Positions 8,839 through 13,939 of a stretch of DNA of 64,000 nucleotides are shown piece after piece; the stretch's first letter is position 1, and each line of letters starts with the position of its first letter. The stretch is from positions 186,001 through 250,000 of the forward strand of contig CDRNVI010000177.1 of the NCBI GenBank assembly GCA_977017575.1. Direction: 5' to 3'. Both the position numbers and the translations under genes were made by a program. Under the pieces are notes generated by a model that was given only the letters and a program-made list of their open reading frames with translations, did no database searches and was not told where the DNA came from. Source of the stretch: Paramoeba atlantica. Taxonomy: Eukaryota; Protista; Discosea.

Positions 8839-9673
8839 ATGGAGGAGAGCACGCACAATGGTGTGAACTACCAGCAAGCAATTGAGGGAATCCAAACCAG
8901 TAAATACATCCTCACCCAACGCTCAGAAAAAAGCCGACTGAGATGCAGTTGCAGGACATTACCACAATGTGTTGGAAGAGCCAAAGGAAAAGGGAAATAT
9001 ATTCCCAACCCTTTGTGGTTATTGAGGAGGCTCTTAATGAAAACCTTTCGCAAGATGAATTGGTGTGCCAAGTGACCACCAAAACATGGAAAAGCGGCAA
9101 AAAGAAAGGGTTTGAGGGTCAAGCCCCTGTTTTAGACCCACTAAAGAGACAGTCTTGGTTCAGAGCTCACGGAGAAGGGTGGAACGACTGGCCGCAAAAA
9201 CTCAACGCTGTCCTCCTTGTGAAAATGTTTGTTTATGGATGGACTTGAGTGACTTTAGAATCAAGGGAAAACAAGGTCCCAAGAAAGAGAGGGAAAAAAT
9301 GTGGTCTCACAAGTTACTGGCTCCAGGAAGAAGATGGGTAACAGTTTGTAATGCCAAAGGAGGAACTGAGTGGGTGAGTGGGCCTCACTCTCCAAAGCAG
9401 TATGATGGAGATTTGTTAATTTACTCTGCCAAAACAATTGATCGGTTGTTTGAGGGCGGAACAGTGGTTGCTGACAACCATTTTCGAAAAGCGACCTGAT
9501 TCTTGAAAAAGGTCTTTTTGATCACAAACAAGTCTTGTGGAGGAAGGCCAAAAATTGTTGATGGGAAGAAAGTCCCTTGTGTGTGTTGAGCCAAGAGGAT
9601 ACAAGAAATAATGAAGAAATTGCTTTTGTACGAGTGGCTGGTGTAAATCTACTTTCAAATCTGTTGGTGGTGT
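8839..9673 (+). pseudogene. PIF/Harbinger/ISL2EU-like (DDE_Tnp_4-type) transposase remnant, interrupted by the LTR element; continues at 11763-11843
   Basis: Motifs VYGWT (degenerate DGT), WSHK...WVTVCNAKGGTEWVSGPHSPKQYD, TVVADNHF, NNEEIAFVR. Removing the LTR element and one TSD restores GWCKSTFKSVGGVYYEDENQHDCTLRFALACHKKIVE*. Confidence 0.65.
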
Positions 9674-9860
9674 CGTTGAAGTCTCACAATTCACTGAATA
9701 TTCCATATGACGAACAATGCATACATTCCTTTTTGACATTCGCATCTTCACTGAACTTACAATGCAGTCATCTTATTGCGAGGGTTGTCGCAAAGCAATC
9801 TCTTCACAATAATAAATCATTCTCTGTTTTCCCAGTTTATTTGGCCTTGAGGAATTAACG
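9674..9860 (+). repeat. 5' LTR
   Basis: CGTTGAAG...GGAATTAACG, contains AATAAA, matches 11576-11762. Confidence 0.92.
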
Positions 9861-9872
9861 GATTAGAAGTCA
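9861..9872 (+). promoter_or_regulatory. Primer-binding site complementary to the anticodon arm of tRNA-Arg(UCU)
   Basis: GATTAGAAGTCA directly follows the LTR and is the exact complement of tRNA positions 29-40 (UGACUUCUAAUC) of the gene at 72-143. Confidence 0.85.
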
Positions 9873-9907
9873 GCCTTCTTCATTTCATTCCAAAGTCTCG
9901 ACAAGTC

Positions 9908-10807
9908 ATGGGTAAAGAAGATTCAATCCCAAAGTTCAAACCAGACAACTATCCAGACTGGTCCTTCAAAATGGCGGGACATCTCCTAGCAAAAGGCGTC
10001 TTTGGATCGATTGATCTTGTATCGAACGAATGGGAAACCAAAACCGACCCCCAAAAACAAGCCATGCGACTGAAAGCCTTCAATGAGATCTTAAAATCTC
10101 TTGCTGAACACAGCAGCGTAGCCCGAACATTCCAACACCACCAAGCACAACAACTCTGGAACCACATACGAACCGAGTTTGATCGAAACACACTTTCTAA
10201 CCAACTTGATCTCAATGAGGAGTTTATCAATTTTAAACACAAGGGAGGTGAAGATGTAGAATCATTTCTCATTCGCTTTGATGATCTTGTGAACCGCCTT
10301 CGTGCTATTGGACTGCCCCAAGATAACAACATCTGTTTCCTTCGTCTCCTCAAAGCTTTCCCTGATTCCCTCGAAGGTGTTCGCCAAAATTTGATTGTAA
10401 ACGGACAATACGATATCACAAATGCAAGAAGACTCGCCAGACGATTTTCATCCTCCTTCTCTCAACCTTCTGACTCTATTCTTCGAATTGGTGGGAAAAA
10501 TCGAGACAAACTCAACAAACATGTCTGCCAATATTGTCGTAAATCAGGACACTCTCGATTCAAATGCAGTATCCGATTAGCTGATGAAAAACTTGGTCTC
10601 CATCTTCCTAACCGTGATGCACCCTGGAGAGCCCAAATGGAAGAAACAATTCAAAAAAGGATTGACGAAGCTTTTAGAAAGGGTCTTGCAGAAGGCAAAC
10701 AAGAAAAACAAGAAGAAGAACCTGAAACTGAGAACGAAACGATGAATCTTATTCAAGAAGCATACGATGAAGCATACGATGAAACTGACGGCTTCTCTTT
10801 TCTTTGA
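9908..10807 (+). CDS. gag: Copia-type Gag (N-terminal NY..W motif, UBN2-like core, CCHC zinc knuckle), 299 aa
   Basis: PKFKPDNYPDWSFKMAGHLLAKGV, AQQLWNHIRTEF, EDVESFLIRFDDLVNRLRAIG, LLKAFPDSL, CQYCRKSGHSRFKC. Uninterrupted ORF. Confidence 0.88.
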   Translation: MGKEDSIPKFKPDNYPDWSFKMAGHLLAKGVFGSIDLVSNEWETKTDPQKQAMRLKAFNEILKSLAEHSSVARTFQHHQAQQLWNHIRTEFDRNTLSNQLDLNEEFINFKHKGGEDVESFLIRFDDLVNRLRAIGLPQDNNICFLRLLKAFPDSLEGVRQNLIVNGQYDITNARRLARRFSSSFSQPSDSILRIGGKNRDKLNKHVCQYCRKSGHSRFKCSIRLADEKLGLHLPNRDAPWRAQMEETIQKRIDEAFRKGLAEGKQEKQEEEPETENETMNLIQEAYDEAYDETDGFSFL

Positions 10808-11560
10808 ATTCATAAACTTGTCTTGTCTCCTTCTTTTGCCTTCTCTCCCTGAGCCTGAACGCGAAAACACTCTCTTCTTCTCCTCCAAAAACGGATAACC
10901 ACAACAAATAAGGAAATTTTTGCCTCCTTCCTTCTCGAACTCGGTCGGCTTCCGGAAAAAGAATCGAGTAGGGGGGAGAAACAACTCTTCTTCAGCTGCC
11001 AATAGAATTCCTCTTCCTCTTTTTCTCTGCACCCTCAATACCAAAACCTCCCAACACCTAAAATAGGTTATTTCCTTCCATCTTTTTCAAACTAACCAAC
11101 TGCATCTCAGAAATCCCCATGGAAAAGATGAAACCCCATCAGAGACGATAGGAACTTCATTTTCTCACCTAAATTTCTTGATCTCTTCTCTCCTGAGGGT
11201 TTTTCGCGCCGTGCTCGTCCCGGTTTTCCCTCGAACAAGGGTTTTCCCCACTTTTGTGGTTTTTCCCTTTTTACCAATGGATTTTTCACACAACTTCCTT
11301 CTCCTTGTGACCAAGTGAATAATGTTTCGAAATATATCAAATCAGTGAATGAAGTCAATGAGAACAAACCCCCAGGCTGGAGGGATGATTCCGACCCAAG
11401 GCCACCTGTTGACATGGAGCGCATAGAGGCATTGACCCAGTGCAGGAAACAAAGGCGGGAAAGTTATAAGTCCATTTCTGAACAGATGGCATCTCTTAGC
11501 TGGATAAAGACACGAAATTATCCTTCCGCACGTGTGACTCCGAACACATTGTTCAATCAC

Positions 11561-11575
11561 AGGAATAGGGGGGAG
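11561..11575 (+). promoter_or_regulatory. Polypurine tract
   Basis: AGGAATAGGGGGGAG immediately precedes the 3' LTR. Confidence 0.85.
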
Positions 11576-11762
11576 CGTTGAAGTCTCACAATTCACTGAA
11601 TATTCCATATGACGAACAATGCATACATTCCTTTTTGACATTCGCATCTTCACTGAACTTACAATGCAGTCATCTTATTGCGAGGGTTGTCGCAAAGCAA
11701 TCTCTTCACAATAATAAATCATTCTCTGTTTTCCCAGTTTATTTGGCCTTGAGGAATTAACG
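11576..11762 (+). repeat. 3' LTR
   Basis: Copy of 9674-9860, preceded by the PPT and followed by TSD GGTGT. Confidence 0.92.
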
Positions 11763-13939
11763 GGTGTGTATTATGAAGATGAGAATCAACATGATTGTAC
11801 CCTTCGCTTTGCTCTTGCTTGTCACAAGAAAATTGTTGAATAATTATTGATTAAAAATTTATTTCTTTTTTTTCTGATCTGAATTGAAAAAATATGGGGT
11901 TTTTTTAATGGGTCAACCCACCGATTTTTACGTTAAAAACTCGGGCTTGACTCTCTTTGGTTTTCTCTTCAAAAACAAAACCAAAAAACACAAAAAAAAT
12001 AATAAACATATCACATTTGGAACAATACATTCGAGTTCATTCTCCACATGTTCCGAAATTCACACATTCTGATACATCTCCTGTTTTTTTTTGTTTTTTC
12101 AAAAAAAATATTTGAAATTTCCTCTCTCTCTCTCTCAAAAAAAAGAGGAAGAAGAGGAAGAAGGATTTTGAAGAAGAAAGAGTTTCTTGAGACAAAGAAA
12201 ACAAAAATAAGACCACAACAAGTAAACAAACAACCTTCATTCTTTTTCCCAACTCATTTCCCAAATCAAATTCCACATTCAAATGTTTTCTTTTTCCTTT
12301 TGCCTCACAAACCCTTCCAAGAGTGTTTTCACCTTATCACCCCACAGTAAGAGGGGCATCATCAAACAACCTCATCCACCTTATGAAATGTTACCCTCAA
12401 TTTCCTTGCAAGTTACTCAAGTACTGGTTCTCAATCATTTGCCTCCACATACATTAACACAAAATATCAAGTAACTAAGTCAAAGAAGAGATGGACCTCT
12501 CGACATTTGAATAATGAGTTGAAATCAACCTTGTTATTTTTACTTCTCTCTCCTGGCCATGCCTGTAAACATGGATGGCGATCATTGGGATTATCCACAC
12601 ACCAAACCGAAAAAACCTCGAAAAATCAACCAACTTTGGAGCAAGCTACCAAAATGAAGCTCAACCCAAGGGAAGAAGCTCTTCCTGAAGACAGAGTTCC
12701 CCAGAGGAGAGGAATATCTCTCTCAATGACAAGGATCTTCAGCAAGATGATGAACCTCCCAAAGTGTCAGGATCGACCAGATCTCCGGAAGGACAAACAA
12801 AACAAAAACGAAACCCAATCCAAAGATCAAATCGAAAATGTGGGTTTTATTCAAGAAAACAAACAAAGGGAACATTTGAACAAGAGAGAAAATGTGGGAG
12901 CGGTAACAGTTGAGATGGGGGGTGTGATAGAAACAAAAAGGATTCAGAAATGGTGTTTTTGTGGAAGGAAACATGGACAAAATCAAATCAGGAAAGGAAA
13001 AAAATAAACATCAGGAAAAACAAGAAAAGGGAAAATAAAACAAAGGGAATATCAGAAAGGAAAAGAGGGAAGGAAAGAGAGAGAGAGAGGGCGGTGATCA
13101 ATTGGGGGAGTAGAGCAATAAGATGGCATCAAATTGAACAGAAGACAACTGAACAGGGTTCATAACAGGAAGACAATTCTCTCTTGAAAGAAGAGGACTT
13201 TGACTATGAGATATTGTGGGAGATGGTCACAAGTCTAGACCTAGAGAGAGCCAGAGTCTCAACTGAGAATGGCTTCCCAGTTATTCATTTTAATGGTGGA
13301 AAGAATTATCAAATGATGCTGCACAAGTGTTAGTCCTTATAAAAACAACACATCCCTGTTGCTCAACAGCTCAGCAGCAAGATGTTTCAACTCTTCAAGA
13401 GATAGTGTTTTGATTGGCGCTATGCGCATATTCCCCTTGGGGTTTCAGGTTTGTCAGAGCTGCAGACAGACACATTTCATACTGGCATGGAATTACCCTC
13501 TCCATGTGATTGAATTTCTCGCTCTACCAAATTGAGGTTGAAGGGTAAATGGCAAAAAGAAAGATTTTGGTGCAAGGAATTCAAGAATTATTTAAATCCA
13601 AAGTTGCTCAGTCTGAGTTTGCCCAAGCGTGGTTATCTGCTGCAAAAAGGCAAAAAGACACAGGGTTCATTTGTTGTTGGACAAGTCGTTCAGGACCAGA
13701 AGGATTATTATCCCTGTTGGTCTCTGAGATTGGAATCTCGACCAGTGTCACCGCTCTCGCTTCTTTCTTCTTTCTTTTTCACTTTTCTTTTTGTTCCTTC
13801 GTTCTCGTGAACGTTGTTTTCTTGTGTTCCGTTCGTGAGCCTGACGCTATTGGTTTTTTGTGTTCTGTTTATTGGGTTTTTTGTTGCCTAGTGCCTTTTT
13901 TACCCTTTGTTTTTCTGTTTGGCCGTATTGTGTACTACG

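Follow-up and report, generated by a model that had tools for sequence, protein, structure and literature searches.

A Copia-type, gag-only retroelement with CG...CG ends in the amoeba Paramoeba atlantica

The 3'-terminal adenosine of the conserved CA dinucleotide bears the hydroxyl that attacks target DNA, and it is treated as nearly invariant among the integrases of retroviruses and long terminal repeat (LTR) elements. A retroelement in a 64,000-nucleotide stretch of the Paramoeba atlantica genome (assembly GCA_977017575.1, contig CDRNVI010000177.1, positions 186,001 to 250,000; the whole stretch is called the window and its contig C177) raises the question of whether a lineage can depart from this rule at both ends, as its two LTRs begin and end with CG. 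The element (window 9674-11762, 2089 bp) is of Copia type and carries gag only. It is interpreted, with a probability of roughly 0.8, as a recent, non-autonomous, gag-only derivative of a lineage in which the outermost base pair is C:G and not T:A (5'-CGTT...AACG-3') and whose integrase joins G. The CG...CG structure itself is real, exact and lineage-wide.

Structure and boundaries of the element

The direct repeat at 9674-9861 and 11576-11763 is 100% identical over 188 bases, including one shared G, the 188th base, which is the first base of both the primer-binding site and the target-site duplication. Read directly, the junctions of the 5' LTR are GGTGT/CGTTG...TAACG/GATTAGAAG, where the left junction of the element continues as ...GGTGT/CGTTGAAG and the LTR end runs into the primer site as ...TTAACG/GATTAGAAGTCAGCC, while those of the 3' LTR are AGGGGGGAG/CGTTG...TAACG/GGTGT. 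The copy on C177, taken alone, could equally be read as having 188-bp LTRs and a 4-bp duplication, which is ruled out by solo LTRs elsewhere in the genome (ATAAT/CG...CG/ATAAT, GTAAA/CG...CG/GTAAA and GATGG/CG...CG/GATGG); as these are flanked by clean 5-bp repeats, the LTR is 187 bp long and the duplication 5 bp (Table 1).

The same boundaries are given by an empty site. Contigs of three public runs from the same organism, placed on window positions 9300-12200, join 9668 to 11763 and skip 2094 bases (2089 + 5), with five letters at the joint (marked 'between: not known') that fit both sides, a single GGTGT and no additional C or G. The terminal C and G thus belong to the element, the ends of which are fixed to the base, and, as both filled and empty forms are present, the sequenced material is polymorphic for the insertion. 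The sequences compared are contigs from Logan, all belonging to one study, and not raw reads, and they may derive from the data behind the assembly; no alternative letter is reported in the three runs at any of the four terminal CpGs. None of the stretch occurs in the one possible RNA run. The sequence-only reading, which had placed CGTTG...TAACG between two copies of GGTGT, with the primer site and the polypurine tract abutting the LTRs, is confirmed by the direct reading and the empty site, and its description of the element as young agrees with the identical LTRs and the polymorphic insertion.

The first 12 nucleotides of the primer site are exactly complementary to a stretch of the tRNA-Arg(TCT) gene in the window that lies in the anticodon stem-loop, which is the mark of half-tRNA-primed elements. 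A further tRNA-Arg(TCT) gene (50687-50759) differs in its anticodon arm and lacks this complementarity. The gag is the sole intact open reading frame (ORF) of the element that matches a protein family (PF14223, E 1.8e-14). Between its LTRs the element thus codes for nothing but gag, and with its primer site and polypurine tract it has the layout of TR-GAG elements.

Table 1. Positions of the element's parts and of related features in the window.
Feature	Position	Strand	Basis or remark
tRNA-Arg(TCT) gene	72..143	-	anticodon arm (gene positions 28-39) complements the first 12 nt of the primer site
Target-site duplication GGTGT, left copy	9669..9673	+	direct reading; one copy kept in empty-site contigs
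5' LTR, 187 bp, CGTTG start, TAACG end	9674..9860	+	direct reading, repeat search, other copies
Primer-binding site GATTAGAAGTCAGCC	9861..9875	+	first 12 nt complement the anticodon arm of tRNA-Arg(UCU)
gag ORF, 299 aa, CCHC knuckle	9908..10807	+	PF14223; ends at GFSF motif
Non-coding rest of internal region	10808..11566	+	from about 11186 homologous to the 3' untranslated end of the 5.2-kb relative
Polypurine tract AGGGGGGAG	11567..11575	+	abuts 3' LTR
3' LTR, identical to 5' LTR	11576..11762	+	direct reading, repeat search
Target-site duplication GGTGT, right copy	11763..11767	+	direct reading, empty site
Truncated subfamily B LTR (last 78 bp, 96% identity), ends ...TTAACG	48917..48994	-	

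The lineage in this genome and in metagenomes

A search of the genome assembly (45.7 Mb, 248 contigs) gave 25 LTR matches. Besides the subfamily of the window element, the genome contains a sister subfamily B with 178-bp LTRs and a 5.2-kb family with 197-bp LTRs, the latter typified by the copy at C158:60152-65385 (hereafter C158), and LTR identity between the three subfamilies is only 72-89%. Thirteen insertions have 5-bp duplications of their own, 12 of which are perfect: GGTGT (C177, the window element), TGATT (C178), ATAAT (C181), GTAAA (C143:187857), GATGG (C143:285264), ACACC (C143:279303), AGAAC (C164), AAGAG (C149:389984), AAAAA (C173), GTCTT (C144), AGTCC (C158) and ACACA (C168), the imperfect one being GGAAA / GAAAA (C188). 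A further solo LTR with CG...CG ends (L189, C145:55999-56171) is flanked by a host repeat of about 22 bp (tctattttattatttccccctc) and has no clean 5-bp duplication. Two matches, C240:23723-23900 and C204:1043-1221, repeat the loci C143:279303 and C139:289758 with identical flanks, and are probably haplotigs or redundant assembly.

The window element is an internal-deletion derivative of a C158-like Copia element, as the two match at both ends and pol is gone between them. Its positions 1-410 match positions 1-420 of the C158 element, translated matches extend through gag to about position 1017, and positions 1513-2089 match C158 positions 4647-5234 at about 71-74% nucleotide identity. The end of the gag ORF lies shortly after the conserved GFSF motif, at which the C158 polyprotein continues into the protease. 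An intact gag is also present in subfamily B (291 aa, 67% identical to the 299-aa gag), and gag-only elements have thus persisted and diversified in this genome.

In C158, gag, a Pol beta-barrel (Pol_BBD, the protease region), gag_pre-integrs, rve and then RVT_2 follow each other in one frame, which is interrupted by two TGA stop codons; each of the three open pieces was translated by itself, with no stop read through and no consensus built, and the first piece served as the query in protein searches. The Copia-like nature that had been proposed from the window is upheld by the PF14223 gag and by the order gag-protease-integrase-reverse transcriptase (RT) in this relative, where the integrase lies upstream of RT, together with the LTRs, primer site, polypurine tract and 5-bp duplication; the TG...CA ends that are typical of Copia but not strictly defining are absent, all young copies being CG...CG.

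The second assembly (ENA ERZ24900291) holds two further 5.2-kb copies. One of them, L188, is 99.3% identical to C158 at a different locus, with a CG...CG 5' LTR and six 1-nucleotide indels, and its insertion site is empty at C173:32782, in a flank that agrees at 99% and continues without the element; the pol-bearing 5.2-kb family has therefore also moved recently. The other, L187, is 97.5% identical to C158 and heavily decayed, with ten stops of its own, yet it is open at both C158 stop positions. L188 carries the second C158 TGA and not the first. This TGA (L026 4496-4498; L188 ctg3329l) lies between RT and the C-terminal part of pol and is common to two loci, from which it follows that a stop-bearing element was mobilised, in trans or by read-through. 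The search for an autonomous partner that had been suggested thus succeeded in part: a 5.2-kb family with the same ends and primer site was found, but no intact copy of it.

C139 (L027) and C149:596794 (L028), considered as second pol-bearing copies, are fragments only. Frameshifted Copia RT fragments, about 40% identical to C158, occur on C184, C144, C182, C167 and C149 (L030, L032-L036) and adjoin tandem arrays several kb long with a repeat period close to 381 bp; no LTR was found at a distance of up to 10 kb. The flank of the polymorphic L188 insertion (L188 1-7883) is part of a family of genes that have NHL and B-box domains, with at least 40 copies of 82-99% nucleotide identity clustered on few contigs (C173, C213, C139, C150 and others).

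Relatives outside this genome were sought by an exhaustive profile search with the first open piece of C158, and few close ones were found. The metagenome contig L062 (51% protein identity to the C158 piece) reads ...CCTACG followed by the same 15-nucleotide primer site, and L064 (43%, in gag) reads ...CCAACG followed by GATTAGAAGT. In L185 (30%) an LTR of about 292 bp, the ends of which are placed by the tract and the primer site, reads GGGGGAG/CGTTACAG...GTTGCAACG/GATTAAGAGTCC, the primer site of this distant relative being of the tRNA-Lys type. The next neighbour, L186 (29%), has a Met-type half-tRNA site after ...AACA. The LTR bodies of the metagenome relatives can not be aligned with those of this genome, and only CGTT...AACG is preserved, which speaks for the ends being under functional constraint. 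As to the layout of L185 (positions 1-1040, JGI 3300057101), the internal 3' end, polypurine tract, one LTR, primer site and gag stand in series, which reflects either tandem elements with a common LTR or an assembly collapse of two LTRs. Two further contigs do not show their ends, as P0009 (L191) is cut within the LTR and has no recognisable primer site and P0007 (L065) has no LTR. A metagenome scan for the primer-site motif GATTAGAAGTYNGCCT gave no gag or pol relative among the 80 loci listed, and a search of viral contigs with the integrase motifs of the clade gave no relatives.

Integrase, mechanism and alternative explanations

A total of 150 integrase cores were aligned, 7 from the CG clade and 143 from other Copia elements, and equivalent positions in prototype foamy virus (PFV) were obtained via a Copia-core profile. 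Clade-specific replacements adjoin all three catalytic residues (D, D and E) at otherwise conserved positions, which is the outcome of the comparison with canonical Copia integrases that had been suggested. The residue following the first aspartate (D1+1) is Q in the CG clade and L, V or I in 135 of the 143 others (PFV Y129); D2+2 is H instead of G (128/143; PFV G187), and D2+4 is T or S instead of E (136/143; PFV A189). Near the glutamate, E-3 is A or P where 136 of the 143 have G (PFV G218), and E+3 is I where N is found in 130 (PFV N224). The counterparts in human immunodeficiency virus 1, which we take to be C65, G118, N120, G149 and N155, presumably line the pocket that holds the 3'-terminal adenosine. 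The best match among solved structures is Ty1 integrase (PDB 7z0h), which has G at E-3 and N at E+3. In a quick tree, C158, P0003, P0008, P0007 and P0009 group together with a support of 0.96; the ends of P0007 and P0009 are unreadable. The replacements are consistent with an altered recognition of the DNA end but are no proof of it.

From the anatomy of the element and the established rules of reverse transcription, the following course is the most likely. Minus-strand synthesis would be primed, at the site abutting ...AACG, by the 5' part of a tRNA-Arg(UCU) cleaved in its anticodon arm, and plus-strand synthesis would start at the AGGGGGGAG tract abutting CGTT. With no spacer between the primers and the LTR ends, the linear complementary DNA (cDNA) would be blunt, with ...ACG-3'OH on both strands. 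The integrase would then join the terminal G, in place of the usual A, to a target cut with a 5-bp stagger. RT and integrase would probably be supplied in trans by the 5.2-kb relatives, and the integrase of the lineage may have adapted to the CG end through the residues beside the catalytic D, D and E. The joining of a 3'-G by the integrase can be read almost directly off the integrated structure, and a specialisation of the enzyme for G may reasonably be supposed. A wider proposal is tentative and carries somewhat less than even odds: the elements may form a deep Copia clade of several protists, found in at least four unrelated samples, the remodelled integrase pocket of which requires CG-3' at both ends, so that integrase and LTR end would be a co-evolved pair, orthogonal to the CA rule, with the CpG kept against methylation-driven decay.

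Several observations weigh against the reading of a specialised G-joining lineage. There is no intact autonomous CG...CG copy among C158, L187 and L188. I at E+3 is also found in a canonical TG...CA family of this genome (L037), and the replacements, being shared by descent in one clade, are inseparable from phylogeny. CpGs inside the LTRs are fairly well kept between subfamilies too, so that terminal CG kept within this genome speaks less strongly for selection than terminal CG kept in distant relatives. In two of the metagenome relatives no more than the 3' LTR end is visible, and its position is given solely by the primer site. The blunt form of the cDNA is a prediction from the primer positions.

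The most serious alternative is a relaxed specificity, in which CG is merely tolerated, any Copia integrase in the cell mobilises the gag-only elements, and the clade residues have nothing to do with the choice of end. An enzyme of this kind is at hand, as the canonical TG...CA family at C219 is intact, with a 1679-aa ORF and identical LTRs, whereas all pol-bearing CG copies so far recovered are broken; furthermore, many end variants are known among plant Copia elements (10.1101/137141, PMC9804982). However, the gag-only elements have the primer site, polypurine tract region and CG ends in common with the C158 family, with GGGGGAG/CGTT also present in C158, subfamily B and the metagenome contig L185, and not with the other Copia families of the same genome, which have a tRNA-Lys-type site (GATTAAGAGTC) and end TGTTA...ATCA and TGTTAC...GACA, with the duplications AGAAC and GGAAA. 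The 5.2-kb CG family is itself insertion-polymorphic, and ACG-3' is kept in relatives at 30-51% protein identity. Deamination at the inner LTR boundaries would moreover give TG...CA progeny, yet young copies are all CG...CG, and Ty1 integrase is strict for CA (PMC8487063). Relaxed specificity is thus considered unlikely, with a chance of about one in six.

Drift of a canonical TG...CA element, or misplaced boundaries, can be judged from the termini of every distinct LTR in the three subfamilies of this genome, in the second assembly and in the three metagenome relatives, where C240 and C204 were not counted a second time and an old copy with ambiguous ends (C164:71143, 79% identity) was excluded. 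The LTR starts are CG in 19 of 26 cases, CA in three and TG in four, and the LTR ends are CG in 25 of 29, CA in three and TG in one; the ends of other copies and solo LTRs, the tabulation of which had been proposed at the outset, are therefore mostly CG and not TG...CA. Some older copies do read TG or CA at one or both ends, as drift would have it. These non-CG ends are confined to copies with other C-to-T or G-to-A decay. The CpG observed/expected ratio is 0.31 in the window, with TG and CA in excess, against 0.78 in the element, as expected from the earlier remark that old CpGs are lost in this region. Wherever the two LTRs of a copy differ, the change is a C/T or G/A transition; in C158, all three differences are at CpG sites, two of them terminal. 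In L187, a copy with TG...CA ends, 57 of 99 CpGs have been lost in comparison with C158, and 93 of the 117 differences of this copy are C-to-T or G-to-A.

As mutation pressure runs from CG to TG or CA, it can not make CG from either, and the CG termini can not be the product of drift. Decay at the start yields both CA and TG, and so does decay at the end, which is predicted by deamination of an ancestral CG on either strand and which no canonical ancestor explains. The identical LTR pair, the removal of exactly 2089 + 5 bases in the empty site and the 12 perfect 5-bp duplications around CG...CG complete the case, by which the drift and shifted-boundary readings are refuted, their residual probability being very small. 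CG...CG is ancestral to the lineage and not drift, and the earlier argument that post-insertion change is an improbable source of these ends has gained the support of 13 insertions, three subfamilies and metagenome relatives at 30-51% protein identity. Mis-assembly as the source of the repeat or its ends is the least probable explanation of all: C240 and C204 do show that the assembly contains some redundant haplotigs, but the Logan contigs of the three runs break exactly at 9674 and 11576 to continue into the flanks of other copies, and ERZ24900291 has the family with the same ends at other loci.

Two copies show particular patterns of decay. In C158 (L026 553-749 and 5590-5786) the outer ends are CG and the inner boundaries canonical, the 3' LTR starting with TG and the 5' LTR ending with CA; as the inner boundaries are those copied into progeny, this copy would template TG...CA offspring. 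The chance of such an inner-decay pattern is about 1% by a rough after-the-fact count. The LTR pair at C188:95789-97878 (L007/L009) differs at 14 positions, all C/T or G/A and many outside CpG, which points to all-context deamination or a process like repeat-induced point mutation rather than CpG decay alone.

Comparison with known systems

The replacement of A by G at both ends, together with changes beside the catalytic residues, makes the lineage a natural experiment on how an integrase reads the DNA end. For annotation, LTR finders set to TGCA or to the published exceptions will miss or mis-trim CG...CG elements, and decayed copies will look falsely canonical, as CG decays to TG or CA. The elements are hence of moderate to good interest for integrase biochemistry and repeat annotation. 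A literature search found no description of CG...CG LTR ends; the repeat catalogues Repbase and Dfam lie outside it.

TR-GAG elements of plants reportedly fit LTRs, a primer site, a polypurine tract and one gag ORF into about 2 kb, are presumably mobilised in trans and have canonical ends, whereas the gag-only elements described here stem from a CG...CG Copia lineage in a protist. The LTR termini of Drosophila copia are said to be TGTTG...AACA, the same inverted repeat as here except for the outermost base pair. As in Drosophila copia and Ty5, the primer site abuts the LTR and is complementary to a tRNA in its anticodon arm and not at its 3' end (PMC5371799); those elements use initiator tRNA-Met and end in TG...CA, while this lineage would use tRNA-Arg(UCU) and ends in CG...CG.

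The primer site of Ty1 abuts U5, so that 3' processing is unnecessary. Ty1 has the 5-bp duplication in common with the present elements. Its integrase needs at least CA-3' when metal concentrations are physiological, and altered ends are no longer used in vivo (PMC8487063, PMC2939329); at the two positions where this CA-dependent enzyme has G (E-3) and N (E+3), the CG clade has A or P and I, respectively.

Non-canonical termini are best documented in the Copia elements of plants, which include Tos17 (TG..GA), TARE1 (TA..CA), AtRE1 (TA..TA) and families of the TGCT, TGTA, TGGT, TACT, TCCA, TGTT and AACA types (10.1101/137141; PMC9804982; PMC5659011), the published motif set being TGCT, TGGA, TGTA, TGGT, TACA, TACT, TATA, TGTT, TCCA and AACA. 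Seven non-canonical types were reported in plants, where only the first T was called invariable (10.1101/137141), eight Copia types in lotus (PMC9804982), and TGTT and AACA types in Rosaceae (PMC5659011). These elements share with the present lineage the non-canonical dinucleotides, short LTRs (178-197 bp here, with a mean of about 270-320 bp there), 5-bp duplications and signs of recent activity in the form of identical LTRs, and integrase differences have also been suggested for some of their families (TGTT). None of these plant types starts with C or ends with G, and CG...CG matches none of these motifs. Most of the plant types are not palindromes and retain A as the 3' base of one strand or both, although TGTT/AACA has 3'-TT at one end, whereas here the change is complementary at both ends and both 3' ends are G, the termini are CpGs in a CpG-decaying genome, and the host is a protist with relatives of the element in metagenomes. 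Non-canonical Copia termini are thus already known, and CG...CG is a further variant, a symmetric change of the outermost base pair.

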